NCBI GenBank assembly: GCA_965202585.1 | Contig: OZ241827.1 | Span: forward strand, 57,722,001 to 57,786,000 | DNA from: Thalia democratica | Lineage: Eukaryota | Length of the DNA: 64,000 nt | Direction of reading: 5' to 3' | Shown here: positions 17,701-40,310 of the stretch, piece after piece | Layout: every line of letters starts with the position of its first letter | Position numbering within the stretch: position 1 is the stretch's first letter | Program-made: the position numbers and the translations under genes | Notes under the pieces: generated by a model | Seen by the model: only the letters and a program-made list of their open reading frames with translations | The model's database searches: none | What the model was told of the DNA's origin: nothing

Positions 17701-20700
17701 TGGGTTTGTGCCCCTTCGACACGCATCGACGGGTGAATGAGGCGATGGGGTCGCCGATATCGGTTGTCAGGGTGATCGAGAATCAGGTGGTGGTTGTCAA
17801 GGAGGAGTTTGTGTGGAGATTTGTCAAGTGGACAAGCTGCAGCGTCACTTGTGGATTTGGTATTTTTTTTAATTTTATTTTTTTTCTAAAAACAGTTAAT
17901 TAAGTCATCATTTTCTTTTTTAAGTAAGTTAAACTAAAAAAATATAAATAATTTATTCAAGGTTTGTAAATACTTGAAAAGGTCCTATACATATTGTTAT
18001 TGTATTATTTATATTATTCTTATCAATTTTATTCTCAACACTATAGGTTTAACAAAATTAGGTGGACTGGTGTTCTGTAAAATTTAATCATTAAGATATA
18101 AAAATACTTTAGTATTGTTCGCGTGCAAGCTACGCGTGTTACTAGTTATAATATTTATCAGTAATCTTCTGTAAGCTTTCACAGATTAAATATACTTCAT
18201 TATTTTAAATTTATCTAAAGTCATCTTTTTCCTAATTCTTATTGACTGCGAACAAATTCATTTCTGCCACCAAATATTTTTGCTAAAATATAGTCTGTCT
18301 CTGTTTTTTCGAATAAAAGCACAACTATTCATTACAGCCAACAAAAAAAAAAATGTAAAAAGTATGACTACATGTGTATCTTTTTTATATGTATGAATAA
18401 AATAGGAATATTTTATATGAGTAATCGACAATAAATATTTTTACGTATTAATTGTCAAAAAAAGTTTTAAGTTTAATAATCCTTAGTTAAGAATTAGTTA
18501 ACAAATTTTCTTTAAAATGTTTATGGTGTAACAAAAAAAACTACTACACAAGTAAGTATATGATAAGTATACACACAAGAGTTATTTACTTGTGTTTATC
18601 AAATTTCAACTTCAAAAAGTGTAAAATAAATATATTTATTTAGTTCACACTTTAATTGATTAAGATTGATAAGAAAACCATAAAATTGTTTTTTAGCAAT
18701 TTCTGTTCAATATGTAAATGTGTTACATTGTAAACTTTTGTTATTTAGATTTATTTAGTTTCTAAATAAAACAAGTGTTTTAACTACTTAAAATGGACAC
18801 ATATTTTAGAGTTTAGATTTTATAAATCTGTTTAGTAGTTGTAATTACTAAGCAAAAAACTTGTTTGATCTTAAGTTTATTGTAATCGTTAATCATCACA
18901 ATATATGACTAAAGTCAAATTTTAATTAAAAAACTAGATGTGTAGCATACAGCTTAACTTGTTAATTTTTATCACACATTAAAAAAGGATTTTGAAAGAT
19001 TAAACACTAATAACCTACTTAGCTGCCATATAGGTTACTTTTAACCTTTAAAGTACCCTAATTGTTTACTTTAGAAATTAATATTAGTTAAAAATTTTTA
19101 TAGATGTAATATTTTGTATTTGTTAGTAAATTTTAACTTGTTGAGATAACCTTAAACTAAGTTAACTTTATAGTAGCTTTCAATCACCTAGAAACTTCTT
19201 ACTAATACTTATTTGATCAGAAATACGTGTATAACTAAAAGCATTTAGTAAACACTTGTAACCTCTATAACGTTTTCTTACCAAAATTGAATTTGGATAG
19301 TATGGCCATAAATTTATCGTTAAAGATGTTTTATCAGAAAAATAAGTAACATAAATTTTATCACTTTTAAATACTATAAATAATTCTATCTCAAACTTTA
19401 TTTTGTGTTATTCTATAAAAATGTAATTTTTGTATTTAAGCTTATGATGAAGACTAGTTTTGAAACTTTAATTTATATATAAATACTGTTTTCTATTATG
19501 TAAATTTGCACTATTAAAACTACTACATGACATTTAGATGCTATTTTTAGTTATAACTTAAAAAAGTTTATTGCGCCATTAGTTGTAATAAAAGATAGAA
19601 AGCCAGCAATTTTTTCTAACAGCCAACAAATTATACAATTATCACTTTTTCTTCGCGCCATCACCTTTTGTCTGTACCCAACTTTGCGTATCCAGACACC
19701 GAATTGTCGACTGTGGTACTTAAACTTTAGCAAATACTCCCCGGCAACGTGAAGTTAAAACCTTAGTTTAAGGGCTTAGAGCGGGCGAAAAGGGATTTGC
19801 AGATATTCGAAAACGTTTGTCGTTCGGACAAATTGGTGTTTTTGGCGGCATGGAGCGAGGCAATTACGAGCGGATAATTCGATATTTTCTGCACAACTCG
19901 ATACGCTGGCACCTGTTTGTTGTTGGGCCGGCACCTGCAAAAATACCTCCATCGTATCGGGTTGCAAACACATCGCGGCTTTGATCCGACTTTAAAAGGA
20001 TGAAGCTCATAACCTGTTTTCATACCGTAAAAGTATGCTAGGAATGACGGTGAATTGACACTGTCAACACAATTTTACTTGGATATTGAAGGTTTTATCT
20101 GAAATTACAGCGTTATTAAAGTGTTTTTGTTTGTAAACAACGCATTAGAAAAGTTGTGTTATATTGCGAGCATTCATTGGGCTGTAAAAAAAAATAAATA
20201 TTTTATATGCAAATATTAGAGTTTAAATTAGTTTTTAAGTTACTTATAATTAAAAAAACAGTTATAACAGTTTTATCAAAAAGATAAAATTTCATTTAAT
20301 GTAATTTAATAATATATATGTATTCTATATTCTATATTTTTATATTCTTTAAAAATATAGAATATAATTTATTGTATTTTCACAGGAATGTCGGTGTCAA
20401 TACCGTTCTGCTACGACAACCTTACAAATCGCCTGGCAGCAGACAGCAGATGCGATCGATCGAAACATCCCCTTCCGAAGCTGGCCACCTGCAAGAGGGA
20501 CCCCTGTCCCGTTCCATCCAAAACTGAAAACGAGACCAGGTAACTTTTATTTGCTTTAATTATTTTGGTGGCGGTTTTTCTAGTTTGTGAAGCAAAACTG
20601 CATGAGAAACGTTAGTACGGTTTTCTGGGTTGCCTGTCAAAAATTGAAATTTGGTAAAATATGACATAGTTCCTTGTAGAAGTGTTCTGATGGGAACAAA

Positions 20701-23700
20701 AGAGCCGTGTAATTGGACTGTTTTCAACGCGCACTGCTTAAGTAACATCATTCAGGTATCATGTATCACTCTTAACCTTACTAAAATTGAATTAGCAATC
20801 GTTACGATCAAAGTGAGTCAAGTAAAACGCGATTGAATCAATAAAAGAAAAAGGAAAAGCAACACAAAATTTTTTTAAAAGTAACTCAAAACATGTGAAA
20901 TTAAGCTAAAAAACCTTTACTTTAACAAATTCATTAGTTTTTATCAAAAATTCCGACAAATGCTATTTTCAGCTAAGTCTAGAATTTGTAAAAAAAATGT
21001 AAAACTAAGCTCATAAAAACTATTGAACAAATATTGCCAATAATATTTATAAAGTGTAAGCAACTTAATTTAAAGTTAACTAACTTTTAGGCTTGGTAAA
21101 ATATAGGCGTTAATATGCTTGAGTAAAGCTTCTTTGATCAGAGCTTTGAATTCTTATGATTGATGTTGTTGAGATCTTATTTTGCTCCTTTAGAGACTCT
21201 TATCGAGCGAGCTATTACGTAAGAAGCTGTCAACGCCAAGAGGAGTGCAAAACTGGTAAAGTTCAATCACTCAAAACTTTTCCCAAACACCCTTTTGAAG
21301 TGTTGCACCTCAATGTATTTATGCCTCGAAACGATACCTTTTATGTAGGCAATTTAGATATCTTTTGTTCGGCAAATCAGGGATAAAGGGTTTATTTTGA
21401 AACAGTTTTGGCCACCTGCAAAACTGAAAACGAGACCAGGTAACTTTTTTTATTTGTTTTAGTTTCTTTGATGGCGATTTTTCTATTTTGTGAATCAAAA
21501 CTGCATGAGAAACGTTAGTACGGTTTTCTGGGTTGCCTATCAAAAATTAAAAATTGGTAAAATATGACTTAATTCATTGTTGAAGTGTTCTGATGGGAAC
21601 AAAAGGGTCGTGTAATTGGCCTGTTTTCACCACGCACTGCTTAAGTAACAGTATTCAGGTATCATGTATCACTCTTAACCTTACTAAAATTAAATTAGCA
21701 ATCGTTATGATCAAAGTGAGTCAACTAAAAGGCAATTGAATCAATAAAAGACTAGGGAAAAGCGACACAAATACTTTTAAAAAGTAACTCAAAACTTAAA
21801 TAGTGAGAATAAACCATGTGAAATCAAATTAAAATACCTTTACTTTGACAAACTCATTAGTTTTTATCAAAATTTCCAACAAATACTATTTTTAGCTAAG
21901 TCTAGAATTTAAAAAAAAAATGTAAAACTAAGCTCGTAAAGACAATTGAACAAATATTGCTAAAAACATTTATAAAGTGTACGCAACTTGTATTAGAAAT
22001 TTACTGACTTCTAGACCTGATGAAGTATAGACGTTAATATGCTTGAGTAAAGCTTCTTTGATCAGGACTTTCAACTCTTATGATTGATGTTGTTGAGATC
22101 TTATCTCGCTTCTTTAGAGACTCTTATCGAGCGGCTCTAATACGTAAGAATCTGTCAACGCCAAGAGGAGTGCAAAACTGGTAAAATTTAATCACTCAAA
22201 ACTTTTCTCAAGCACCCTTTTGAAGTGCTGCACCTCAATGTATTTATGCCTCGAAACGATACCTTTTATGAAGTCAAATTAGATATCTTTTGTTCGGCAA
22301 AACAGGGATAAGGGGTTTCTTTTGAAACAACTTTGACTTGAGTCAGCTGATAAGAATTAAAGTGCTGCTGGTAATGTTCTGAAGGCAATTTAAAATAAAT
22401 TTGAAGTTTTTATTTCTAATATTACGTTTCATCAATTTGTCTGCTTCTTAATGTTTATATTTACACTTAAAATTTTAAACATTTAAGTTTATTTTTTAAT
22501 TTTACATCAGTTTAGCAGCTTTTTTATGTTTATTTTTACGTTTAAAATTTTTAACATGAAACATTTATTTTGAAAAACGAAACCAGTTATAATAGTTATA
22601 AACTAAAGTCTATTATTTTAATCTTTGACAAGAGAATTAATGCTGAACTTAATGTTTTTCGCTACCAAATATTCAACTTTGGTTAAGAACACTACATTTA
22701 TAAAAAATAATTGTAAACAATAAAACATATATTCCTAATGCACTTAATTGACTTAATAAAAAAAAATGAAGTAAAAAATACATTTAAGACAAACTAATAT
22801 TTTTGGTTTTACATTAGATATTTTAACGAGTAATTAAAACTATTTAACAAAGCAAAAATATTTTGTAAATTAAAAAATTAAAACGTCAATCGTTTTATGG
22901 TAAATAATTAATGCTTTAATTTTAACATTTAAAGTGTTAATGTAACGGATATTAGTGGTATATTTGAATTACTTTAGTGTAAAAACTATTTTTATAATAC
23001 TAAGACGGCTATGTACATAATTTTTTTTCTAAAAACACTAAACAGAAGAACTTTATAAACAAAAGTTTCTTTATAATTCATTAACACGATTAAAACTTTA
23101 TGAAACTACATAAATTGTTTTAGACGAAAAATCGTAGAAAAATAACAGCATTTGTAGTACAGGTAAATAGCGAACATGAGATAACTTTCCATGTAAAGGA
23201 AAAAGGCTAGAACTTCTTTGCTCACAAATTATTTTGAGTATGTAAGGCTTTGCATAGGAATTTGTGTAAAAGCAGAGTTAGACAAGATAATTTTTGAGTA
23301 AAACAGTTTTTGCTCAGCTGATAAGCTAAAAGGTTGCATTTTTGTTTCTAAGTTTATTTCAGAGCTTAGATGAAATTTAGGTTCTGTATTATGTTTTTAT
23401 AGTGCAAACGAAATCAGTTTTGTTTTAATATTATTTTTTTTATTAAATGTGGATTAATAATCTCTCTTACAATTACTTTAAGACGAATTTTCATTAATCA
23501 AATTCATAAAAAAAAATTAAAATCACCACAATTAAGTTATGTGTTTATCAGATTTTAACTCTTTAAAAGTTTTCAAAAACAGTAAGACAAAAGAAAAACA
23601 CAAGTATTTTAAGATATGTTAGTAAGCTTTTGTAGTAAATCCCTTTATTAATTTAGAACTTTTTTTTACCTAGAATGACTTAGATTGTTTATTTTTACTT

Positions 23701-26700
23701 TATGTGTGTTTGACTACAGTTCAAAAGTAAATTAATTTACCTTTTTATATGCAAGCTTTACTTGCAATAAAAGTTTTTGTAAATTTAAGTAGAACTGATA
23801 GCATCAAGTACAAATAACTGCTGACACATCATTACATATTAAAGTGTACATTAGACAACGTGCAATTTTGCAGTTAATAAAACCGATCGCAAAGCAAGGT
23901 ACAAAAAACAATTAATAAATTTTCCATTGTAGATTAACGACTAGACGCCATTAAACAAAGAATTTCATTGTAGTCAGTTTTAATCTCATTAGCTTCCTGC
24001 TTTATCAAACTTATTAGTAACTATATCAGAATTAAAAAAAAAATATATAAACTTGGATTCTGCCCAACTGGTTACTAATTAATTTTCATCAATCAAAATC
24101 ATCATTTCAGCAATTAAAACCTAGTTGTGTGTAAAAAAGTATACGAGCATGCTTATCAACAAATTATGAGGCAGAGATCCAACAAAGCAGAGCACCGAGT
24201 AACTGTTCAAATAGTCAGATGATATCAAAAAAGTGAAAACAATGTCAGCAGCTAGAAGTAGCAGCAGATTTCTATTTTACAAATTTGTCATCGTTTTTGT
24301 TATTTCGCTCGAACCGCGTCTCCACGGCAACCTTATTGTCGCCGCCGTTTATTGGCAACCGACCGGCGATTATTTCACGGCCAACAAGCCGCAATCAAAC
24401 GGCTCGGGGGTTGAAAGCGGGAATGCAGGTACAAAGCTTCCATTAGAAAGTAGTTTCCCGCTTAATAATAAAAGGAGGTCTGTTGAACTGGTGAACGAGG
24501 CATCGCGTGAAGTCAGAGCCCAGTTAGTTTGCTATTTTTTTAAGATAAAATTATTTTTTTTTTTTATTAATTATTTTTTTACGTTCAAAAATAATACTTT
24601 AAGAAATACTTTCTAAATAAGAAAAAAAAAGTATGACCGAGTTGTAAATATTTTGATGATGCTTGAAAAAAATAATTACAAAAAATTATCGTTAATGGTG
24701 TTACAAAACAGTAAATTTAAGACTAGTTTAAAAAACATTTAAAAAATAAATAAATTTTTAACACAAAAACTGTTATTAAACTTATAGTTGAAATATATCA
24801 TGAAAAAAGTCTGATTGTTTTTTTGCTTATTTATTATCTAAAACTTAGGTTGGTCGATTCATAGAAAGTTTTGAATATAGACTGCTTTTATAACATTTAA
24901 TTGAGACAATTATATTTTAAAAAAATGGATAAACAAACTGCAACAAAAAATTAATAATAACAACGAGCAATTTTTTTTTTGTGATTGCATTACCTGAGCG
25001 ATCTTTAACTACAAATAGTTGCAAACATATAGTCAAATGTAAATATTTGCATAAAAAAAAAACCTTTCAAAGCGGGTTACTTGGCCTTCGCACAGCGTGT
25101 TTTATGTGTTTTTGCTTTTGATAATTTCTATCATTTAACACTTAAACACTCGTCGATATCATCTATTAACTTTGCACTGTAGAGTGTTATAATCAAATTA
25201 ACACGTTTTTATAATTGACATCTATCAATTACAAAGTTTGATTTTAAAATATCAAAAAAAAAAATGAATTGTTGAAAGTAACGCAAAATAAGATGTGGAA
25301 ATTTTTGAGAGCTAAATTTTTGAGATAATTTTGTGATTTTACATTGATGAAGATTTTAAATATTTTAATATGCTTACGTGATCTTTTTGTAGTAATTTTT
25401 ATTTGTTTTTACTTAATTAGTCTAAAACATCATATTTAGTTTTCTTAATGAATCTAATAATACAAAAATAAATTATATTAATCTATGATGTTATAATAAA
25501 GTAAGTAAATTTTTACTGTTGTTTAAATTTTTAACATGTGCAAGAGAATTTGTTTCATAAAAAACGTATTTAAAGTCAAAATTACAAAGTTTGAAAACTT
25601 TCAAATAGTTGTTGTGAAAATTTTGTGTTTGCTTATTCATTAATGTACAAACTTTTTTTTATATTTAATAATTTTTTTGTCACTAAGCAGAAATAGATTA
25701 GTACTATTTGTTTAGTTATAACTGTCAAGATAACTTATTGGTTTTTATTTGCATTTTGTCTGTTAACAGTTCAAAAGGACTTCTACAAACAAAAGGCTAG
25801 TATTAATTATGGTGTTAAGTAAAACTAATTGTAAACACTTTTCACATTAGTAACAAAAACAGTTTTCAAAAACAAGTTAAAGACCAGCCTTTAAGTTACA
25901 ATAAATCATTTAAATTTTAAACTTGAAATAGTTCTAGAAAAAAATATCATGCTGATAATAGACCCTAAATTAATTGTAGACTATGATTCATAGATTAAAA
26001 CTTGATTATTATGAAGTTATATGGTACTATATTTTGTAATGTCTAGAATGAAATACGACAATTTTTTTTTCTCGATACAATGTTTATAAAAAAATAGTCT
26101 CAGCTTACAAAAAGCTATAAACTATCAAGTTTGTATTAAAATGTTATTTAGTTGTTCGCTAATAGTATGTTTTTTTTTTATTAAAGATCAAAAATAAATT
26201 TTTCTTGACAAGTATATTTTGAATGAAATAAAAACTTGAACTTTTTGTTTAATAGTCGTTAAAAAACCTTCCTTTGAAGTTTTTAGGAGTTTAAGTATTA
26301 TTTTATCTAATAAAAGAAATATTTACGAGATGAAACAACATTGTTTTACAACCCTAAACCAGTATTAATTGTGTTTGACAAAAAACATCGTTGGATAATA
26401 AAAGATTATTTAATGTGATTGTTTAAGCTATTTCACTATATAATGAAATGTGAGATTAACAATATAACTTTATTTTCAAATTATCTCAAAGCTAAAAGTT
26501 GATACAGATTATCTAAAAATAAACATTATTTGATTATTACTTTTTAAAATTTTAAATGCTTTTATCACTTTTGGTAATGCTTTTTAGACACTATTTTATT
26601 TAAATGTTAATTCTTTAATCATCAAAGTTTATTGATGATTTTTTTTAACAAAAAGAATGTTGCATATTTTTTAAATATCTTACTATAATATGGAGAATTA

Positions 26701-29700: not shown

Positions 29701-32700
29701 AATTTTAAATCAAAGACTACTTAAGTACTGCACTTGGTTAAACTGAATTAGTGATTACAGATATAAAAATATTAAAGCAGACATTTATTTGTACAAATTA
29801 AAAAGATAGAAAATTTACCAAACAGTTCTCGTAGGTAATTTGTTCTTTAAAAAAGACTATTTAGTATAATGTAAACGTATTTTGTGTATTCATATTTAAG
29901 AAATAAACTTTTTACTGCTTATTATACTTATAGTTTAGTTGTTTTTGTTTCCAAGATATAAAAGAAAATCTTGAAAAGTTGAAACTTCATCAGAGAATTT
30001 TTTTAGTAACTACGTTTTACTTTTAAGTTTTTCAATCAAATTTATAGCTTCAGGTCTAAAAATAGCATTTACCCTTTGAACCATACTTAAGCTGAAGCAA
30101 TTTGTTTTAAAGCTGAAGTTTATGACAGACAGATTTAATAACATATTGTTTTCGACAATGTTTTTGTTTTCTGTCAACATTACAATTTCGTGTAAATAGT
30201 TTGAAATTTAAATATGAATACTTTTTAATTAGAAAAACTTACTCATATTTCATAATATTTTCAACTGACCTTTTCAAAGACTTGTCGCGTTTTTTAACGA
30301 AAATCTTCTTTATACATTTTTCAATTACAACTACATGAACATAGTGGTGTAAGCTGTTTACGCGAGACTAAAAACAATAAAATTTTGTTTTGAATGTGTT
30401 TATAAAATTGTATAGACACGAAAGCATATTCATATTATGATGTCAATTCAATTTCAATATATAAGGTAAATTTTATGAAAACTTTAGTTTAAGCTTTTTG
30501 CAGTAAAAGATGCAGTCAGTCTATATAAGGATTGTAAACAAAGAAGCTTTAGCTGAAAAAAAACACAAAAATAATATTTACACTAAATACTGTTAAGTTT
30601 GTTGATAAAAAGATCAGAAAAATGTTTTTTTTACTAAAAACAAATTTGTTTGTTTTGGTTTGTATTTTAAGTTCGTATTTTATAATTTAAAGCAATATTT
30701 TTTAAAAGTTTTTGTTTATTTTTACTTTTTTATCGCACTATAATACAGCTTGATACTTTTAAACGTTTAGAATAAAAAACCATTATAAGAAGTTGTTTTC
30801 TAATTACTATTCAACTCAGATTACCATTCAAATTTTTAACTTATTTCAATTTTTTTTTACTTCAAATCCAAATTTTTAGTTGAAAATAAAACAAACTGTC
30901 TTTACTTATATTTAACAGTTTCGGAATGTTATGTATAAAACAAACATAATTTTCTTAAGTACTTATTATTGTTACTTGGCAGTATTTTTAGTTGCTATTG
31001 GACCCTGTCAAAGTATCCCAATTAGGTAAGTACCTTTAAGAAGCAATTCTAAATAGTTTTTAAAGTTGTCATAACTAAACAGTTTAAAAATACTTATGTT
31101 GTACCTAATGAAAACATGATTTCTACAAGGTTTTTATAACATCAAGTGAAAACGTTTTACTGTGATATCATTTAAGCCTCATGTTATAAATGAGAAAGGT
31201 TATACGCTTAATATAAAAATTTCAAGTCTTTAGTAGAGCAAAAAATAATAATAACCAGTAAATTAGTACATGAGAAAAAACATACTTCACAACTTGTTTA
31301 TATAGAAGATTAATTTCAGTAAACTTTTAAATGTTTGTTTCGTATATACTCATAGAACTTTAAAATTCTTATTAAAAACTCAAAATTTGCATAAGCTACA
31401 AAGAAAAGCCAATAGATAGTGTAATAAAGTTTTCAATAATTTTAGACCAAGTTTATCTGTTCTAAGTATATTTTTATATCATTAAATCTTGCTGTTTTAC
31501 TATATTGTTTTACCCATTTAGCCGAATTAAAATAACGACTTCTGTATTGGTATGTTTATACAAAGTAGGTTTTTTTCTTTTATCTAAACATAACTATAAT
31601 GTTTTATTTAAACTTGATTAGAAAATTAGACGAAAAAAAGCTAACTTACAGATTTGTATTTTTAACCAACTATGTATTATACTAGTTTCTTTAAAAACTC
31701 TGACAGTATAAAACATAGCCTTTCCGGTAACATTTTTACAAAGTAGAAGAAAAATGTAGGTTGATTTAAAACATTTTTTAGTATTTTTAATAGGCTCTAC
31801 TTATCTTTACATTAAATTAATAGCGAAAACTTAAAAAAAATTAAAAATATTCCAAAAAATTTTCAGATGGGAAATAGGTCAGTACGGTTCGTGTTCGAAA
31901 ATGTGCGGCAGAGGGATCAGAAAAAGATCTGTCACGTGTAAGTTTATGCCTGAAAATTCCACTCACCACGTCACCAACGATGACGTCATGCCTGAAATCA
32001 TGTGCCCGAACCCGAAACCTCAGTCGGTTGAACCTTGCGGGTTCGCCACCTGTCCCCCTGTCTGGATGAAGTCTGGTCTCGGGAAGGTTAGTTTTAAAAA
32101 ACCTATTGACATACCAAAATATATTCTTGATAGTAAGATTTTTTTCTTAGATTATTAAACCAATTTAAGCAAGGTTTAAACATTTAACAATTTTATAAGC
32201 TTAAGACCATTCATTGAGCTTAGCCTAGTAATTGAGCCTAGTCATCTACTTTAAGGAATACTTTTTCATTAAAAAAACTTTTTAGTGTTCTGAGCAATGC
32301 GGTAACGGGTTTCGTGAAATTTCTTACTTGTGCAAACAAAGAATAGGAACTGGCAAATTGATCCAGGTTCCTTCAAAATATTGTTCGCAGAACAAACCGT
32401 ATCGGTTGACAAGGAGAAAGTGCAAAGTTAATGAGTGCGAACCGAAATTCACTGCGGAAGATTGGAGTGAAGTATATATATTTTTCAATTTAATAAGTAT
32501 CTTGCCTGTAATTGACATAGTTAGCAACAATTAAAACAGTTTAAAAGATTTTGTATATAAGAATGTTACTACTAGGCATTTATTACTATAACTCATAAAT
32601 AATATTCTCTTTGTTAATTTACTTTGTTGATGACTTTTCAAAATACAAAAATGCACAGCTAAACCCTTTTTTTAGTGTAAAGGTGACTGCACTAAGTCAC

Positions 32701-35700
32701 GAAAAGGTTGGCAAACAAGAAAAGTTGTCTGCATGTACATGAAAAACGGAAATTGGCACAAAACTAGTGCGAATTCGAAATACTGCAAAAACTTGAAACC
32801 ACTTCCGGTCAGAAGAAGTTGCTCACTGCACAGGAAATGTATGTCCAGCTTGGGTGAGTCAACCGTTTGTTACATTTAAAAATAGTTAATTTTTTTTAAC
32901 GTCTTTTACGTCTAAGTAATTTGTATAATGCTGTAATTAAAGCTGCCAATCAAGAAGAGCATTCCACGATCCAAAGGAGGCCCAACCCGACCAAGATCAA
33001 CGGAGGGCTGAGAGTATTCGTGCAGAAGAGCGCCAGAAAAATCCCCCTCCAATTGACCCTCCCGCTGAAGGCCTTCGTCATCCCTGGAACCACCATCATC
33101 GTCAAGTGCAGCTTCAAAAAGTGAGTTTTAATGCAAACAATAACGTCATGTGCAAGGTCAATGCGCTACAAAATAAAGTTTGCTTATCGGCAAGTGGGAG
33201 AGAATGATGAAGGCAATTAGCTTTGATTATCTGCTGCTTTGCTTGCTCATTTGACGATTTGATGGCAAGTGGGCAAACAAGGTTACATCAATCAGAGGAA
33301 GTTTTGCCTCCTGTTTGCCCAAAAACTTCAGACAATGGCCTAGTTTTACATTAAAAAATAAACAAATATCTGCAAACAACTTTTGCTATTTTGGCTTCAA
33401 AGAGTCACAGATAGTTTTGGCGCGCTATAATGAGTATTGCAGTGCGAATTTTGTGATGTTTCGTTAATGGGAGATATTTTCGGACATTAATCTTCCTTTT
33501 GGAGCTAATTAACGCTATTTTTACATTGCGGCGGTCCTAAATGTTATTTCTTCCAGCTAATTAGCTCTATTTTTGCTCAGCGGTGCGCCATCAAAACACG
33601 CGTGGTTTGTCAACAAGCGGAGGGTGAAGAGCAGGCGGGGGAAGGTGATGGTGACGAAGGGGGGCAACCTGAAGATGAGCAAGATCAGGATGAGGAGGAG
33701 GCAGATGGTGAAGTGCCAGGGAGGACAGGGCAGGAGCAGGCTGCTCGTTCTCATCAACAAAAGTTTAATTTTTATTTTATTTCAAATAATCCTAATTACC
33801 AAAAGAATATGTTAACTGGTTTAATTAAAAATTAAGACTGTTGTAGCGTTTGAGAACTGAGTTAGTAAAACAAAATTTATTTTAATTTTAAATTGTGTTA
33901 CTATACAACCTTAATACTAAACTATACAATGTGTTGCTTTGAAGCTCAAGTTCAATTAGTTTAAATGCTGTTTAGATGATGTGTGTGTAATAAGTAACAA
34001 ATTCAAATCAGCTTGAACTTCAGTAGTTAATTGAATTAAAGATTTGGAAAAAAAGTTTGATTTTTGTGTTTTTCTGAATACAGCTCTTTGTGTTTACAAA
34101 TTACGTCACTTTTAATTTTATTTACGGTTCAATTAAAATAAATAGCAATTTCTCAAACTTAATTTTTTAATTAAAAACGTGATTTATATGCTGATAAATA
34201 ATGTACAATGTTTGTAATGAGAAGTGCATTAAAAATTAAAAAACAAAAAACTTTGCAAAGCAGGTTCGAAATAAGAGTTCTTGAAAATTTATTACCAGTT
34301 TATTTTCTCTTTAAATTTATCCACTGAACATGTTTTGAATGAGCTTTTGAATTACGTAATCCTTTGTAGGCTAATAAAGCTTTAAAATTTAACTTTATTT
34401 GTAACACAATTTCAACAAAAGGTTTTAAAAAAATATATGGTTGTAAAAATTTTCACATTCCGTTAAAACTTTTGTTTTAAATAAGAACTGTATAGTATTT
34501 TTCTCAGCTATAATTAGTAGAAAATTATGAAAAAGCTTAGCTTTATAAAAGTTTGAAGTAGTTCAAAATCAAATAATACTGTCTTTTTACGTATAACAGC
34601 TTTACATTGCATGACAACGCGTGTAAGAACATTAAAAGCAACTAATTAAAAATTTTAAAGATTAAATTTGTATTTAATTAACCTTTAGGAGCTGCCAGCG
34701 GATCGCATAAAGGTTTAGTGCAAGTTAAAGAGAACCATTTGAAAGAAGGGGGTCAAGCTTTTCAACAATCCATTACCAAGTACAGCGACAGAAAAGTTTG
34801 TCAATTTTTCACGTGCAAATTTTACATAAAATATAAAAAGCTGCCTTTAATTTTAAAAGACTTGAACTAGTTAAATTACTATTAAATTATTTAAAATTTT
34901 ATAATCATCAGGTAATTTTTAATTGAGTTTGTAACAACAAGACCGAATAAGTTTAAATATTTGTTCAGTAAATTCTTGGCATAGGAGTGACTTCCATCGT
35001 ACAAGTTAATTGTATTAAAATTCCAAGTATACACACAACTTCGCGTTTCAACTCTAACATTTGCAGCATTTGAAGCTCGCAACTGGAACTAAAGCTGTGA
35101 ACAAGAAGGTAATTAGAAAGAAACCTCACATAATCAACGATTACAAAGTCGTCCAACTACAAGAAATTGTGGCTGCTAAAACTGACTTTTTAGGTATTTC
35201 TAGTAATATACATAGATATTTTCAAAACTATTGATTGCTTATATATTTTATTTTATTAAATTTAGGAATTAGTTGTTTTTTAATGACTTAATAGCTTTAT
35301 GCTAATATAACATCCGTTAACAACCTTTCATAAAAAAATCAAGGTTATGTAGTTTAAAAAAAAATCTTGGTTTCATTAACAAGTTTTCGACGAAACATGT
35401 ATTGTACTTTAAATTCTGTTTCCTAAATTAAAATGTACTTTAAGGCTACAGAGAACGAAAGCACCTTCCGTTGGACTCGAAACAATCCACTGTGGTTGTC
35501 ACGATAACTCCTCCCCCTACCGACGAAAACGGGGTGAAAAAGGCGCCATCTATCCATGTTGAGCCGACTATCGACCCCCTTCAGTACAATGATGACGTCA
35601 TAGTCAACGTCGGAGGGTCGGTGGTGGTCGTTGGGTCACGGCGGGTGACCATTTTGTGCGAGGTTACAGGGGAATACCCTATTAAGGTGAAATGGATGAA

Positions 35701-38700
35701 AGACGGACAAGAAATAAAAAATAATGACAGGTTTGATTTATTTGTTACATAGTTTTTTGTTCAAATTTCATTTACACTACTTGAAATGGGTGCACGACTG
35801 TTTAGTTTCTGACAATTCAAATTCCGACAACTGAAGTTCTTATAACTTGTAGTTATTTCAAATTATATCTATTAATGAAGATTGATTTTTATTTTTTTAT
35901 AGTTGTAATGTAATTAATAAGACTTACATTCACATTTTATTTGTTTTATTATTTAATTTTTGAGATAGGGTTAAAAGCAGCTTTAGATTTTATTAAAATA
36001 TACTTGTTTTTATTACTTAATTTTTTTCCCTTAACAACTTTTCAATCTATTCACAATTATAATTTTATTTATTTGAGTTATTATAACTAAGTTGGCCTTT
36101 TTTTAACTAAAAATATTTTTTGAAGTTATGGCCCCTTACATTTTTTGTAAAAACTAGCGTTGTCGAAATTTGAACAGTAATGTAGACACTTGAAATAGGT
36201 TCTAGTTTATAAACATTCATAGTTAAACACATAAAGAAAATATTATATCTTAAAACAGAATGATCAAGCTTGGTGATGGATCCCTGAGAATTTTCAACCC
36301 GGAAACATCAGACGCTGGTAACTACGTTTGCATGGCAACCAATCAGTGGGGAAACGACAGCCGAATGGTTTCACTGACAGTCACCAACAAACCAACAGTT
36401 GTGTCCACGACCAGAGATGTTGACGATTTTGTGTCCATGGACTTGACAGTGACAGTTGGGTCCCATGTCAGGGCGAGATTAGGAGCCCGCGTTGTTATCA
36501 GGTGCCCGACTAGAGGTTAGTAAAGTGAAGTATTTAATTTATAATTCATAAAAATTTCATCTTTAACTTTAATTCGGATAATAATTATCTTTTTTATAGT
36601 GTGTACAACATGTTTTAATCAGACAACTACTAAAACTTACAATAATTTTGAGCTTTCTGTTTACACTAAATACTTCATAATTCAAATCATACTCTCACGT
36701 AGTTGAATTACGTCTGCAAACTTGTAATATTTAAACATTAAGTCAGAGCATTACAAAACTTCCGCCAGACTATATTTAATAAAAAAAATTACGCGAGTTG
36801 TAATATATATATGTTACGAGTTTTTATTTTGTGCATTACGTCAAAAATAATGAAAATTACACCCAAAGCAGCTGCTACTGTAGTTTAAAATTAGATTAAT
36901 TAATTTGTACATTGAATGTATAGCAACGTTGAATTTTTAACAGTGGTGTTTTATTAAAATCACACAGTAGAAACATTGATTAATTTCAAAGTTTTTTGAA
37001 GGTATAAAAGATAAAATTTTCATTTATGAAAAGTTTTATGTTTTATTAAAAATAAACATTACAGGCTCACCAGAACCATTTGTTCAATGGAACAAAGACG
37101 TCAACGGTCTTCAAAGAAACTCGCAAATTTTAATCGACAACTCTTTGGAAATATTTCCCACCACTTTAGCTGACACGGGACATTTCAGTTGCTTAGCAAC
37201 AAACCCTTTTGGTAGCTCTTACCAAGCAACCATACTAGAAATTGTCGGTACGTAAAATTTTTAGCTCTTAAATTAACTTTTAAAAGTTGTAATTATTAAT
37301 AACTTTTTTAAAACACAGAAATGTAAAACCATAACTAAGTGTAAGTTGTTATAAGTTTTACAATATCTAAACGAGAACTAATTAATTTAAAAAAAAGCAG
37401 TTATATTTTAAACTAAGAAATGAAGCATTTAAATATTGTTAAACCATTGCATCAATCATCACAAATTAAATAGTAGTTAGGTTTGAACAAAGTTTTTTAT
37501 GGCCCGAAACTTCTCTCTTACTTCCACTTAACAAGTTTTTAATTAAGTATTTATGTCAGTAAGAGTTCATGTTGTAACCTTAAACAATAGATTACAACAC
37601 TTATTACAATATATAAACTCTGTACAATACCTGTAGAGTATTTATTTCTTTAAATAATTTAAATTTTGAATGTAATTTGATTGCATTTAACTTAAGAATT
37701 GCTCCTTCAAGGTAAAAGTTATACTTTATAAAACAAACAGACCCACCTCATATTTCAAATGATGGAGTGATACTCAAACAAAATGAAATGAACGGACTTC
37801 CAGAACTTTTATTAACCGATTATACTAATCCAATTTACAGAGTTAAAGCAAACACTACTATAATAATGGGTAAGTTTTATTATTAACTAAACTTATTAAT
37901 TAAATAAAAAACATAAATAATTTAGTTAATGACACATATAGGTTGTCCACTGAGTGGGTATCCGGAACTAACAGTAGAATGGATGTTCAAAGGAAGTGCC
38001 ATAGAAACAACAAACAATTCGACAAAATACAGACTGATGCACAACAACAAAGTTCTTTCAATCAGCAACTTCAACAACGTTTCAGTTGGCGATTACTCTT
38101 GCAAGGGAACAAACACAGCAGGATCGGCAGATGCTAGTCTTCAACTGAAAATTATCAGTAAGTTTACTTTGAAGCTTCATACTTTTAAGGCTATATATCA
38201 AAGTATTCTTCTATTTATGTTGTACATTAAACATTATAAAAAAACAGTAAAATTTGTTGATTGTGTTAAATATTCATGACTAACTTTATAACACTCAATA
38301 TTATTTCTGATGTTAACTTACATCAATGTATACTTTTGCTTTTAAAGTTTTGTGTTAGCTTTTTAAAACACAGCCTTGCATTCAACCTTCTTATTTATTT
38401 TCAGTATACAAGTACCGAAAGGAGGGGTTGACGGAATGCAGTGCAAAGTGCGGGAACACGGGAACCATCACTGACAAGCTGGTGTGCATAGAAGACGGGG
38501 CGAGGACGGTGGACGATTGGTACTGCAAAGGAGTGGCCAAGCCGCAAGTTGAAACCCGGTCCTGCAACAGAAGAGACTGCCCGCCACAGTTGGTACTTTT
38601 TTAAATTTATTAAAACAAAATACAAACAAGTACATTACAAAAAAATATTTTTATTTTTTGTTCTACAACAGTATACAAACAAGTTTTATTTATGTCTAGA

Positions 38701-40310
38701 TAAAAGTTTTTGATAAACATGCCTATACAATACGTATAAAATGACGAGTAAATGTAAGCGATTTCTTTATGCCTATATCAATACTGAATTATGGAAACAC
38801 TTATGAAAATAAAATAGAAGCTAAACAAGCAATAAAAGCACTTTTTACATTTTTCAACAAATTTAGGTCATAGAAGTTTTTACCTAGATTAGGCGGATTA
38901 GAGTTCAAACATGTTATTTAAAAATTTTACAGGAAATAATTGGTCTTTAATGTCAAGTGCTGACTTCTTAATCACTCATATCTGGCTTTTATTTAACTTT
39001 TAGCGCATTAAAATCCTTATATTAAAAAGAATACTTTGAATTTGAACTAAAACTACAATTTGTCTCATAAAAAAAAAAAAATTTAAGCAATAAGCATTAC
39101 GTTTAAATTTTGTAACCAATTTTAGGCTTTTCACAAATTACAGAAAATTTACATACAATAAGTTTTTTAAACCACAAAAATTTATACTGTATATTGTTGT
39201 GTACTTTTTAACTTAATTTAATTTACAAATGCTGTAAACAGCAGTAACATAAAAATTCATCATATCAATGTCTTTAACAAGTACTATAACAACCATTAAA
39301 AACCTCTATATTAGAATCAAACTAATTACAAGAAATAATATAACAGATATTACGCAAACGAATGGAGCAAATGTTCAGTTGATTGCGGAAATGGAACAAG
39401 ATTCAGAAAAATATCCTGCGTGGTTCTCATGTCAGACGGAACTGTTCGTCAGGTTGCCATGGAAAGTTGCCGTAGCAACCAGCAACTTCCGCCACAAAAA
39501 GAAACCTGCTTCAGTAACTCGTGTCCTGAGTGGAAGCCCAAACCATGGAAACAGGTTAGATTCGGTGATTTTTTGGAGGGTTAAAATTATTGTACTCACA
39601 AGATTTTTAGAATTCTACTTTTGTTAAAGCTTCAGTATAAAAGTTCTAAAAATCTGGTTAATTAATCATATAAGTATGTTTGTTTTTTTCTTTTTTATCA
39701 ACAAACAAATTAAAACATTTTTGCTAAACTTAAGTAACAAACCAGCAGTGTAGCAAGAAGTGTTACGGAGACGGAATTGGAATTCAACTGAGGCAGGTCC
39801 ACTGCGTGGCTAACAACGGCACAATCATCCAAAAGTCCCACTGCAAAAACCTGCCGAGACTAGAAAAGTTTGATAATAAAGCTGCACAAGCAACTTGTCA
39901 TTTATTAACGATTAAAAATAATTTATCAGACAACTTGAGTTTATTTCATTGAATTTACACATTTTTCTTTATAACACATTATTTTTATAAGTAATAATTG
40001 AAAATGTTATCACAAAGCATTTTTTATTTCTAATTGATCTCACTGTACTTATATTAAAAATTTCACCAGAAAACAAAGCTGTCTAAACATCCGATGTAAG
40101 CCAATTTGGAGACCGAGTACCTGGTCCGTTTGCTCGGCAACTTGCGGCAGCCAAGGCATAAAAACGAGAATTCTTGCCTGCTACTACAAGGGCAGGCCAA
40201 AGCAGACCGCCAGGGGGCGTTGCCTAGCGACGAAACGGCCTCAGGTTTCCGCCCCCTGCAACAGAATCCCCTGCAGCGAAAATCTTGTGAGAGTGCAGGG
40301 AAAAATTTAG
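2729..40310 (+). CDS. ADAMTSL1: ADAMTS-like protein (punctin; ADAMTSL1/ADAMTSL3/MADD-4 family), 33 coding exons, about 1729 aa: SP, TSR1, Cys-rich, spacer, 8 TSR, 4 Ig, 4 TSR
   Basis: Manually chained GT-AG exons with compatible phases throughout (total 5190 nt, divisible by 3). Motifs: [17 protein letters not shown] (TSR1); [10 protein letters not shown]...VVDGTRC...VCIEGKCE...[25 protein letters not shown] (ADAMTS Cys-rich); repeated WxxC-S-x-x-CG TSRs; Ig domains with DAGNYVC, DTGHFSC, VGDYSC. No metalloprotease domain. Assignment to ADAMTSL1 versus ADAMTSL3 is not resolvable; this is probably the single pro-ortholog. Confidence 0.93.
3228..3329 (+). CDS. ADAMTSL1: ADAMTSL exon 2 (acidic N-terminal linker [34 protein letters not shown])
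   Basis: cctgcag acceptor, GTAAG donor, only one open frame, phase 0-0. Confidence 0.85.
3756..3850 (+). CDS. ADAMTSL1: ADAMTSL exon 3 (TSR1: [27 protein letters not shown])
   Basis: aatag acceptor, GTTAGA donor, phase 0-2, canonical TSR motif. Confidence 0.9.
4256..4301 (+). CDS. ADAMTSL1: ADAMTSL exon 4 ([15 protein letters not shown], end of TSR1)
   Basis: tacag acceptor, GTACGT donor, phase 2-0. Confidence 0.88.
5149..5409 (+). CDS. ADAMTSL1: ADAMTSL exon 5 (Cys-rich module, [14 protein letters not shown]...VCIEGKCE)
   Basis: ttgcag acceptor, GTGAGT donor, phase 0-0; matches ORF 5125..5421. Confidence 0.92.
7247..7367 (+). CDS. ADAMTSL1: ADAMTSL exon 6 ([25 protein letters not shown], start of spacer)
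   Basis: ccacag acceptor, GTACGT donor, phase 0-1; hallmark ADAMTS motif. Confidence 0.92.
8138..8681 (+). mobile_element. Non-autonomous MULE/foldback-like DNA element, copy 1
   Basis: Perfect 9-bp TSD GTTAAATAT (8129-8137 and 8682-8690); ends GGG...CCC; inverted subterminal arrays of AAATTGCACGAG / CTCGTGCAATTT; three internal units containing GGGTTAGGGG. Confidence 0.75.
8967..9029 (+). CDS. ADAMTSL1: ADAMTSL exon 7 (spacer, [14 protein letters not shown])
   Basis: tttcag acceptor, GTAAAT donor, phase 1-1; resembles the spacer IP-G/S-A/S-xNI motif. Confidence 0.8.
9304..9449 (+). CDS. ADAMTSL1: ADAMTSL exon 8 (spacer, ...[16 protein letters not shown])
   Basis: ttgcag acceptor, GTAAGT donor, phase 1-0; GP-I/L-xE spacer motif. 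Confidence 0.82.
11092..11266 (+). CDS. ADAMTSL1: ADAMTSL exon 9 (end of spacer IRYKYY, start of TSR2 PCSATCGD)
   Basis: ctgtag acceptor, GTGAGT donor, phase 0-1. Confidence 0.88.
11521..11680 (+). repeat. SL-like 16-mer plus hammerhead-core repeat, copy 1 (internally deleted)
   Basis: ATTCTATTTGAACAAG at 11521-11536, then CTGACGAGGTCTTTGACCAAAA at 11553; the downstream sequence aligns with 42981-43150. Confidence 0.6.
12172..13332 (+). mobile_element. Penelope-like retroelement remnant: GIY-YIG endonuclease C-terminal part with inverted pLTR arms
   Basis: ORF 12485-13018 has [19 protein letters not shown]...LRREQH...SSIQEHL...F.VL...VLDSLFI...P.IC.Q, the PLE GIY-YIG pattern. Arms 12172-12486 and 13013-13332 are diverged inverted repeats. 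No RT domain is present. Confidence 0.85.
12485..13018 (+). pseudogene. GIY-YIG endonuclease fragment of a Penelope-like element
   Basis: Motifs as above; 5'-truncated; the expected catalytic Glu appears as Asp (VLDSLFI). Confidence 0.8.
13288..13341 (+). ncRNA. Degenerate minimal type I hammerhead ribozyme-like motif in the PLE pLTR
   Basis: AAAGTATATT-CTGATGA-AGAGCTAAGC-GAAA-TTAA-TT-AATAAACCTTT: core boxes present, palindromic TTAA stem III loop, stem I TATT/AATA; stem II is imperfect. Confidence 0.45.
14205..14364 (+). CDS. ADAMTSL1: ADAMTSL exon 10 (rest of TSR2)
   Basis: tttag acceptor, GTATGT donor, phase 1-2. Confidence 0.87.
14764..14811 (+). CDS. ADAMTSL1: ADAMTSL exon 11 (48-nt Tyr-rich microexon [15 protein letters not shown])
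   Basis: cacag acceptor, GTGAGT donor, phase 2-2, open frame. Confidence 0.7.
14949..15159 (+). CDS. ADAMTSL1: ADAMTSL exon 12 (TSR3, start of TSR4)
   Basis: ttgtag acceptor, GTAAGC donor, phase 2-0; [16 protein letters not shown]...[16 protein letters not shown]. Confidence 0.92.
15424..15556 (+). CDS. ADAMTSL1: ADAMTSL exon 13 (TSR4, [16 protein letters not shown])
   Basis: aacag acceptor, GTTAGT donor, phase 0-1. Confidence 0.9.
16007..16109 (+). CDS. ADAMTSL1: ADAMTSL exon 14 (polybasic linker [29 protein letters not shown])
   Basis: ttcccag acceptor, GTAAGT donor; phase 1-2 bridges the flanking exons, which are otherwise out of phase. Confidence 0.8.
16461..16617 (+). CDS. ADAMTSL1: ADAMTSL exon 15 (TSR5, [17 protein letters not shown])
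   Basis: aaatag acceptor, GTATTT donor, phase 2-0. Confidence 0.9.
17691..17859 (+). CDS. ADAMTSL1: ADAMTSL exon 16 (end of TSR5, start of TSR6 [10 protein letters not shown])
   Basis: ttgcag acceptor, GTATTT donor, phase 0-1. Confidence 0.88.
20386..20539 (+). CDS. ADAMTSL1: ADAMTSL exon 17 (rest of TSR6, ...[17 protein letters not shown])
   Basis: ttcacag acceptor, GTAACT donor, phase 1-2. Confidence 0.88.
20482..22335 (+). repeat. Tandem duplication (unit about 0.9 kb, 2 copies) including the exon 17 3' end and donor
   Basis: AAACTGAAAACGAGACCAG|GTAACT at 20521-20545 and 21421-21445; long colinear similarity of 20540-21405 with 21440-22330. Confidence 0.9.
24242..24522 (+). CDS. Candidate alternative first exon of a short ADAMTSL isoform (own signal peptide)
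   Basis: GC-rich [41 protein letters not shown]...[18 protein letters not shown] ending CA|GTTAGT, phase 2, in frame with exon 31867. No transcript evidence. Confidence 0.55.
31867..32086 (+). CDS. ADAMTSL1: ADAMTSL exon 18 (TSR7, [24 protein letters not shown])
   Basis: tttcag acceptor, GTTAGT donor, phase 2-0. Confidence 0.92.
32286..32471 (+). CDS. ADAMTSL1: ADAMTSL exon 19 (TSR8, CSEQCGNG...)
   Basis: tttag acceptor, GTATAT donor, phase 0-0. Confidence 0.88.
32676..32853 (+). CDS. ADAMTSL1: ADAMTSL exon 20 (TSR9, [19 protein letters not shown])
   Basis: tttag acceptor, GTGAGT donor, phase 0-1. Confidence 0.88.
32943..33120 (+). CDS. ADAMTSL1: ADAMTSL exon 21 (linker and start of Ig1, VFVQKSARK...[13 protein letters not shown])
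   Basis: ttaaag acceptor, GTGAGT donor, phase 1-2; resembles the punctin VYIQ...AYLLPKTAVVLRC segment. Confidence 0.88.
33581..33762 (+). CDS. ADAMTSL1: ADAMTSL exon 22 (Ig1 second half, very basic)
   Basis: ctcag acceptor, GTTTAA donor (weak), phase 2-1; Ig Trp (AWFVN) and second Cys (MVKC) at the expected spacing. Confidence 0.8.
34689..34795 (+). CDS. ADAMTSL1: ADAMTSL exon 23 (linker)
   Basis: ctttag acceptor, GTTTGT donor, phase 1-0, open frame. Confidence 0.7.
35067..35193 (+). CDS. ADAMTSL1: ADAMTSL exon 24 (linker)
   Basis: ttgcag acceptor, GTATTT donor, phase 0-1, open frame. Confidence 0.72.
35445..35730 (+). CDS. ADAMTSL1: ADAMTSL exon 25 (linker and Ig2 first half, [21 protein letters not shown])
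   Basis: ttaag acceptor, GTTTGA donor, phase 1-2. Confidence 0.88.
36259..36515 (+). CDS. ADAMTSL1: ADAMTSL exon 26 (Ig2 second half DAGNYVC, start of Ig3)
   Basis: aacag acceptor, GTTAGT donor, phase 2-1. Confidence 0.92.
37065..37247 (+). CDS. ADAMTSL1: ADAMTSL exon 27 (Ig3, GSPEPFVQW...[11 protein letters not shown])
   Basis: tacag acceptor, GTACGT donor, phase 1-1. Confidence 0.9.
37741..37869 (+). CDS. ADAMTSL1: ADAMTSL exon 28 (start of Ig4)
   Basis: aacag acceptor, GTAAGT donor, phase 1-1. Confidence 0.82.
37942..38157 (+). CDS. ADAMTSL1: ADAMTSL exon 29 (Ig4, [13 protein letters not shown]...[10 protein letters not shown])
   Basis: atag acceptor, GTAAGT donor, phase 1-1. Confidence 0.9.
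38405..38588 (+). CDS. ADAMTSL1: ADAMTSL exon 30 (TSR10, [10 protein letters not shown]...CNRRDCPP)
   Basis: tttcag acceptor, GTTGGT donor, phase 1-2. Confidence 0.9.
39347..39554 (+). CDS. ADAMTSL1: ADAMTSL exon 31 (TSR11, [11 protein letters not shown])
   Basis: taacag acceptor, GTTAGA donor, phase 2-0. Confidence 0.9.
39749..39867 (+). CDS. ADAMTSL1: ADAMTSL exon 32 (TSR12, [19 protein letters not shown])
   Basis: cagcag (NAGNAG) acceptor, GTTTGA donor, phase 0-2. Confidence 0.85.
40070..40310 (+). CDS. ADAMTSL1: ADAMTSL exon 33 (TSR13, [12 protein letters not shown]...CNRIPC; reads to TAG 40308-40310)
   Basis: caccag acceptor, phase 2. The 3' end is uncertain because a possible donor GTGAGA lies at 40287. 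Confidence 0.85.

Follow-up and report, generated by a model that had tools for sequence, protein, structure and literature searches.

A probable internal first exon for a short secreted isoform in a tandemly amplified punctin-type ADAMTSL gene of Thalia democratica

The Caenorhabditis elegans punctin gene, madd-4, yields long and short forms by way of alternative promoters (PMC11385328, PMC13142758), with Cys-rich and spacer modules present only in PunctinL (MADD-4A/C) and missing from PunctinS (MADD-4B) (PMC13142758). The vertebrate proteins ADAMTSL1 and ADAMTSL3 (punctin-1 and punctin-2) share the PunctinL domain plan (PMC13142758). For neither of these did a narrow literature search find a published internal-promoter form. 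In human THSD4 (ADAMTSL6), variant 2 is transcribed from an alternate promoter and, with multiple coding exons missing at its 5' side, begins at an alternate ATG, which results in a distinct N-terminus and an isoform 2 of 658 amino acids (aa) as against 1,018 aa (PMC8559271). Here we analyze a stretch of 64,000 nucleotides (nt) of DNA from Thalia democratica (C2:57,722,001-57,786,000 of an 802-Mb assembly; hereafter 'the window', to which all positions without a sequence name refer). The window is one unit of a tandem ADAMTSL array, and a candidate alternative first exon lies within an 11.3-kb intron of its punctin-type gene.

In our assessment, the stretch from 24146 (or slightly upstream) to 24522 is probably an alternative first exon of this gene, with its own promoter inside the intron, and gives a short secreted ADAMTSL isoform. 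In its transcript, 24522 would be joined to the shared exon that begins at 31867, and translation from the ATG at 24242 would produce a signal peptide of ~29 residues, a poorly constrained linker of ~64 residues and then the common body of thrombospondin type 1 repeats (TSRs), immunoglobulin (Ig) modules and further TSRs. The predicted product, a secreted protein of ~1,000-1,100 aa, would be without two parts of the long form, its N-terminal TSR1/Cys-rich/spacer module and its first TSR block, and a division of labour between the two forms is conceivable. An internal first exon of a short punctin-like isoform had been proposed in a preliminary description of the window; it is now supported by a splice junction in RNA and by a reading frame kept in relatives.

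The candidate exon is set off by composition (47.7% GC, versus 26.9% in the remainder of the 11,327-nt intron, 20540-31866). Its frame is open over 24215-24522, downstream of an in-frame TAG at 24212, and the coding part, 24242-24522, comprises 281 nt, or 93 codons plus two bases (phase 2), ending at a donor at 24523 (cca/GTTAGT) whose hexamer is identical to those of the donors at 15557, 32087 and 36516. The last exon specific to the long form, 20386-20539 (...accag/gtaact), also leaves two codon bases. Since both donors are in phase 2, both join exon 31867 (ttttcag/A TGG GAA) in frame, whether from 20539 or from 24522, and the short-form junction peptide reads ...EVRAQ followed by the residues of that exon. 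The preliminary description had claimed a GC-rich 281-nt open reading frame (ORF) from this ATG in an 11.3-kb intron, a phase-2 GTTAGT donor shared with the three other sites, and an in-frame join to 31867; frame, base composition, intron length, the hexamer at all three sites and the agreeing codon phases of the two donors were each re-derived here. When the transcribed stretch was shuffled 20,000 times with dinucleotides preserved, 0.25% of the shuffled sequences contained an ATG-initiated ORF that was 93 codons or longer and met the donor in the required phase. The peptide has no Pfam match, and no Rfam match was found in 23500-25000.

Available sequencing runs comprised four marine metatranscriptome runs of one study and four runs, from two organisms, of unrecorded library type. 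Contigs of X1, X2, X5 and X6 were placed on window positions 20300-25300. Runs X1 and X2, from one metatranscriptome sample, are RNA; X5 and X6 cover all bins including the intron and read through the donor (e.g. 24302-24531), and were taken as DNA-like. The RNA contigs cover only 20385-20539 and 24146-24522, leaving 20 of 30 bins (mostly intron) empty, and the few low-depth intronic pieces look repeat-like. Past 24522, contigs of both RNA runs go on with ATGGGAAATAGGTCAGTACGGTTCGTGTTC, the first 30 bases of exon 31867, which occur once in the window, at 31867, and an identical continuation is found past 20539. This is the 24522-31867 junction that the preliminary description had named as a check; the joint is read from contig loose ends and spans 7.3 kb here and 7.3-8.5 kb in all paralogs. 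The long form is spliced in the same sample, where a loose end before 20385 equals window 17841-17858, followed by GT. The spliced form is missing from the DNA-like runs and is therefore specific to RNA. The contigs across the two junctions have comparable word depths (22.3 versus 29.9, and 80.2 versus 86.7), contig depth not being a measure of expression. As a separate observation, the RNA splices an exon ending at 17858 to 20386, and the number of upstream exons may differ from that in the preliminary description.

An exhaustive profile search with the exon peptide among 1.84 billion representatives returned only two short ORFs, both on marine metagenome DNA (P0001 on contig L032 and P0002 on contig L031; one is from a Tara Oceans assembly), and no annotated full-length isoform among those representatives; a 90%-cluster search added one further near-identical ORF. 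Both relatives keep the ATG, the hydrophobic core and the segment RLHGN. In L032, the closer relative, the frame is preserved with an insertion of 6 nt. In L031, the distant relative (~76% nt identity over most of the coding sequence), the coding sequence from the start to the segment LPLKS, past which the alignment is unreliable, differs by indels of -6, +3, +6 and -3 nt, all multiples of three, whereas those in the adjacent non-coding leader measure 6, 2, 14, 5, 2 and 3 nt; this ORF likewise ends at a phase-2 GT. Conservation of the frame in related genomes, another check named beforehand, was thus borne out in both by indels of whole codons. Upstream, the block 23907-24145 is 79-84% identical to the distant and 88-94% identical to the closer relative, while the intron past the donor falls to 45-52% identity with L031, the random level. 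Taken together, conservation of the upstream block, preservation of the frame in the exon and lack of conservation in the intron look like a promoter followed by a coding first exon.

Within the genome, the candidate exon occurs eight times, always at the equivalent site of array copies (C2:57.67-58.15 Mb and an unplaced contig, C761). The array consists of eight near-full ADAMTSL copies in both orientations, with exons 90-97% identical. The exon is open in seven of the eight, the remaining copy having TCA changed to TAA at codon 2, and both the ATG and the donor are invariant in all eight. Over 24100-24522 no copy has an indel, whereas in the flanks each pair of copies differs by ~1.7 indel events per 100 nt, and the mean mismatch among paralogs is 0.052 (0.050 for the leader 24146-24241 alone) versus 0.14-0.16 in the flanks. 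The features are collected in Table 1.

Table 1. Coordinates of the candidate first exon, its surroundings and the exons of both forms.
Feature	Position	Strand	Basis
Conserved non-coding block, putative promoter/proximal regulatory region	23907..24145	+	Identity to relatives; function putative
TATATAAA of the preliminary description, probably not a core promoter element	24044..24051	+	Not conserved; 102 nt before first RNA base
RNA-covered leader (5' untranslated region) with three upstream ORFs and in-frame stop 24212	24146..24241	+	RNA contig X1 record 4
Alternative first exon (probable), coding part	24242..24522	+	ORF, RNA ends, shuffles, paralogs, relatives
Predicted signal peptide	24242..24328	+	Hydropathy; core kept in distant relative; cleavage site predicted
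Splice donor GTTAGT	24523..24528	+	RNA break point; invariant in 8/8 paralogs
Shared acceptor exon (TSP1_ADAMTS), first common to long and short forms	31867..32086	+	RNA loose ends, Pfam
Last long-form-specific exon, phase-2 donor	20386..20539	+	RNA joins 17858 to 20386 and 20539 to 31867
Other common exons: two more TSRs, Ig modules, four TSRs, stop 40308-40310	32286..40310	+	Pfam, heuristic chain; small exons individually uncertain

Residues 1-29 of the predicted protein comprise a basic n-region (MSAARSSSR), a hydrophobic core of 9-14 residues (Kyte-Doolittle 11-residue means of 2.0-2.6 over residues 10-25) and a polar c-region (EPRLHG) with Gly at -1, and may be read as a cleavable signal peptide, with cleavage tentatively placed after Gly29. 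Translation, cleavage of the signal peptide and secretion of the short form are accordingly predictions from the sequence. Near the end of the exon the peptide reads NNKRRSVEL. The preliminary description had pointed to a basic KRR/S site here; it is present in the window copy and is not conserved, reading KRSS in two paralogs and being absent from L031, and as a furin site it was rejected, with no Arg at P4.

A heuristic, homology-weighted exon chain from ATG 24242 stays open over 1,079 aa as far as the stop at 40310, with some small exons doubtful; an earlier chain (778 aa from exon 18, at 31867, onward) was discarded, having missed the Ig exons. The length of about 1093 aa proposed previously is close to this figure. 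By Pfam searches of exon frames, the downstream body holds three TSP1_ADAMTS repeats, at least three I-set Ig modules and four further TSP1_ADAMTS repeats. TSP1_ADAMTS (PF19030) matches ten exon frames between 14740 and 40307 at E <=0.002, eight of them above the gathering score (exon 31867-32086, E = 1.1e-10), and includes further TSRs in upstream exons, outside the short form; I-set (PF07679) matches 35444-35749/36254-36517, 36980-37252 and 37926-38276. Of the three TSRs, four Ig modules and four TSRs described before, the TSRs and three Ig modules were thus recovered, and the fourth Ig, which has no Pfam match, is likely at 33026-33785. The Cys-rich module ADAMTS_CR_3 (PF19236) matches 7208-7372 (E = 1.7e-4, 22 bits; cutoff 21). 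It lies upstream of the candidate exon, in keeping with the claim that the short form lacks TSR1, Cys-rich region and spacer; for the spacer itself, no match was obtained in the frames scanned. Nor was there a PLAC match in these frames, in which short exons were scanned singly, and a TSR directly precedes the end of the chain at 40310. No reprolysin or disintegrin match was seen in the frames tested, and the gene may extend 5' beyond the window. By its predicted Cys-rich, TSR and Ig modules, the gene is a member of the ADAMTSL family.

The conserved block 23907-24145 is a putative promoter or proximal regulatory region, and both the short form's own promoter and its exact start site are presumed from such indications. 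RNA contigs are absent over this block; the 5'-most one (X1 record 4, 24146-24402) aligned from its first base, without a leader-like overhang. The preliminary description had noted TATATAAA at 24044. The motif is there, at 24044-24051, and is probably not the core promoter element, as it reads GCATAAAA in three of the eight paralogs and TTTACAAA in L031, and is 102 nt away from 24146, where the RNA begins further downstream. Spliced-leader trans-splicing was also considered. At AG 24218 it was rejected, since no leader-like loose end was found and one contig reads through 24218; for AG 24110 no leader-like loose end was found either, in RNA contigs that begin only at 24146.

Several of our observations weigh against an alternative coding first exon. 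Amino-acid constraint on it is weak: the ratio of non-synonymous to synonymous substitution (dN/dS) is 0.70 among paralogs and 0.5-0.86 against relatives, while the neighbouring exons 20386-20539 and 31867-32086 give 0.15 and 0.08 among paralogs. Seven open frames out of eight are, by a rough and uncomputed estimate, about what neutrality would leave at such divergence. Conservation among paralogs is not specific in itself, as other GC-richer islands of the same intron are equally conserved. The motif TATATAAA is not conserved and is probably not a core promoter element, three upstream ATGs in the leader could dampen translation, and the RNA derives from one sample of one study, in the form of contigs, which carry no true 5' end, strand or quantification. 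Finally, at the window-private sites 24272, 24277, 24301, 24351, 24372, 24375 and 24435, the RNA has the letters of the paralog consensus. Signal peptides with an adjoining linker usually show a high dN/dS.

The last of these points bears on an alternative compatible with the alternative first exon, namely that exon and junction are real for the family while the window copy is silent or decaying and the RNA stems from its paralogs. We consider this unlikely, though the least unlikely of the alternatives. The RNA carries the consensus letter at every window-private site in the exon, so the feature is established for the gene family rather than as expression of the window copy, and one 257-nt RNA contig has 24214 G>A, which among the copies is peculiar to the one at C2:57685679. 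Private replacements in the window copy also fall on otherwise invariant positions (among them Cys44 to Tyr, Ser45 to Phe and Arg65 to Lys). However, the DNA-like runs X5 and X6 are likewise without the window letters at 24351, 24372, 24375 and 24435, and the private letters may be alleles of the assembled individual rather than markers of a copy; ATG, open frame, donor and upstream block of the window copy are all intact. Counted together with S37Y, the replacements C44Y, S45F and R65K occupy sites fixed in the other copies and mostly also in relatives, and neither RNA nor DNA runs show their letters.

An intronic start could instead yield a poorly translated or non-coding transcript, regulatory or prone to nonsense-mediated decay, with the ORF a by-product of GC richness; we judge this improbable. 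It would account for a dN/dS near 0.7 without an excess at third positions (variable sites among paralogs are distributed 13/17/15 over codon positions), for a GC-rich core in which all three frames are open for 50-69 codons, and for upstream and leader sequence conserved at least as well as the coding sequence. The main reason to retain it is the three upstream ATGs in the RNA-covered leader (24149, 24166 and 24219), which open ORFs of 6, 18 and 5 codons. Against it stand the match of ORF and donor phase (p = 0.0025 in shuffles); the indels between start and LPLKS in two relatives, all multiples of three, which nearby non-coding ones are not; the identical hydrophobic core in the distant relative; a dN/dS of 0.45 in the tail half of the exon; a start context, AAAACAATGT, with A at -3; and the positional counterpart in an older paralog (P1, described below), which is under clear coding constraint (0.32 overall, 0.12 in the tail). 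The first two upstream ATGs, 24149 and 24166, are also present in relatives, and the short ORFs may act in translational control.

Less probable still is an internal cassette or poison exon, entered through an acceptor such as ttcag/C at 24110 and putting a stop into the long form. An AG with a pyrimidine-rich run is conserved at 24109-24110, and with the RNA contig stopping at 24146 the true 5' end is out of view and contigs cannot prove absence. Yet entry at 24111 in phase 2 reads AGC AAT TAA, an immediate stop; loose ends at 20539 lead to 31867 only; no joint between exon 20386-20539 and the candidate exon, and no loose end in front of the latter, appears among the best-supported rows of either RNA run; no RNA lies on 23974-24140; and the conserved block reaches 240 bp upstream, far more than an acceptor needs. 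The variant of an in-frame cassette exon was rejected for want of an in-frame acceptor between the stop at 24212 and the ATG. Chance, a transposon fragment or DNA contamination of the RNA libraries may practically be set aside, for although hydrophobic ATG ORFs are common in this AT-rich genome (~3.5 per 10 kb under a loose filter), those of at least 90 codons number only 0.14 per 10 kb in controls, the sequence is present eight times only and always at the same place in array copies, it has no Rfam or Pfam match, and the spliced form is absent from DNA-like runs while intron bins are empty in RNA.

Outside the array, the exon-18 TSR has two more divergent copies, P1 at C2:20.04 Mb (60% identical) and P2 at C5:17.476 Mb (50% identical). 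In both, the TSR exon resembling exon 18 is entered in the acceptor phase of the window gene (tttcag/A TGG ...), and the downstream exons of P1 are collinear with window 31867-40310. No N-terminal ADAMTSL-like exons were found within 40 kb upstream of P1 or 10 kb upstream of P2. The only strong candidate for a start exon of P1 (L033:2123-2424, i.e. C2:20036522-20036823) lies 7.7 kb before the exon-18 homologue, in a GC island (0.40 versus 0.23-0.26); it has an ATG, 100 codons and a hydrophobic N-terminus, and ends with ...EIRPQ at CA/GTGAGT in phase 2. In relatives from Tara metagenomes this ORF has exactly the same length, with a dN/dS of 0.32 (tail 0.12). In P2, the equivalent exon is found ~400 nt before 17476227 (reverse complement of L035/L036 9514-9593); it has 80 nt, starts with an ATG, is signal-peptide-like and ends in a phase-2 donor. 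P1 and P2 thus look like short-form-only genes, which supports the TSR-Ig-TSR body with its own start exon as a functional unit.

Similarity between the start exons of P1 and the window gene is not significant (BLASTP E = 3.6, hhalign E = 0.15, permutation p = 0.03-0.09), so that start-exon homology, fusion or partial duplication remain conjecture. A heptamer, AGCATGC, which four loci have at a distance of 96-106 nt before the ATG, reads AGTATGC in P1's relative and was therefore not relied on. It would be a rather doubtful extrapolation to see the internal promoter as the relic of a free-standing short punctin gene, of which P1 and P2 would be survivors and from which the array genes would have arisen by fusion with an N-terminal ADAMTS-like module, or to trace the long/short design back to the ancestor of bilaterian punctins and regard it as homologous with the madd-4 one.

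Other observations concern the array and its surroundings. Two partial copies (C2:57865200, plus strand, and 57896805, minus strand) have the exon-18 homologue and are without both the start exon and exon 20386-20539. It is unusual for a punctin-type gene to be multiplied to this extent, and the expansion hints at a structural role in bulk. A duplication of ~903 nt is specific to the window copy (20650-22300; the paralogs gap across 20686-21286), and DNA contigs of two other samples join 20880 to 21784, making it a copy-number polymorphism. Four GC-richer islands of the host intron (26836-27135, 27436-27700, 28350-28800 and 29236-29385) show exon-like identity of 0.90-0.97 among array copies; that at 28350-28800 was found in the eight array copies only, and no Rfam match was obtained in 27000-29600. 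They may be enhancers, additional exons or simply islands that mutate slowly. On the minus strand, at 48400-51400, long ORFs with LDL-receptor class A-like Cys repeats and a seven-transmembrane-like segment suggest a relaxin/LGR-type receptor gene adjoining the ADAMTSL copy.

The present analysis gives the annotation of an eight-copy ADAMTSL array a second start supported by RNA, and it offers targets for isoform-specific work in the unique 281-nt coding exon, the conserved upstream block of ~240 bp and the short-form-only paralogs. Should the short form prove to be expressed in a domain of its own, the species could serve to test the generality of the synaptic division of labour, between cholinergic and GABAergic synapses, known from C. 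elegans. Alternative first exons that swap the signal peptide are common, and the result is therefore useful more than surprising.

Among vertebrate relatives, ADAMTSL1 and ADAMTSL3 are built of TSR1, Cys-rich region, spacer, TSR block, Ig modules and a second TSR block. The window gene resembles them in having ADAMTS_CR_3, TSP1_ADAMTS repeats and I-set Ig modules, with no PLAC found at its end. THSD4 variant 2 follows the same gene-structure logic in a chordate ADAMTSL, but belongs to a different ADAMTSL subfamily that is without Ig modules, unlike the window gene. As in madd-4, the predicted short form of the window gene has its own ATG exon, starts past the Cys-rich region and shares all downstream exons; nematode punctin, in contrast, has one Ig and a PLAC domain where the window gene has three to four Ig modules and no PLAC seen, and the window gene sits in an eight-copy tandem array. 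The comparison is one of gene structure, madd-4 having in addition a role in receptor clustering and control by UNC-3/UNC-30. The long/short design of punctin-type matrix proteins thus occurs outside nematodes and mammals, and the case described here works like madd-4 and THSD4, a sound annotation rather than a new principle.

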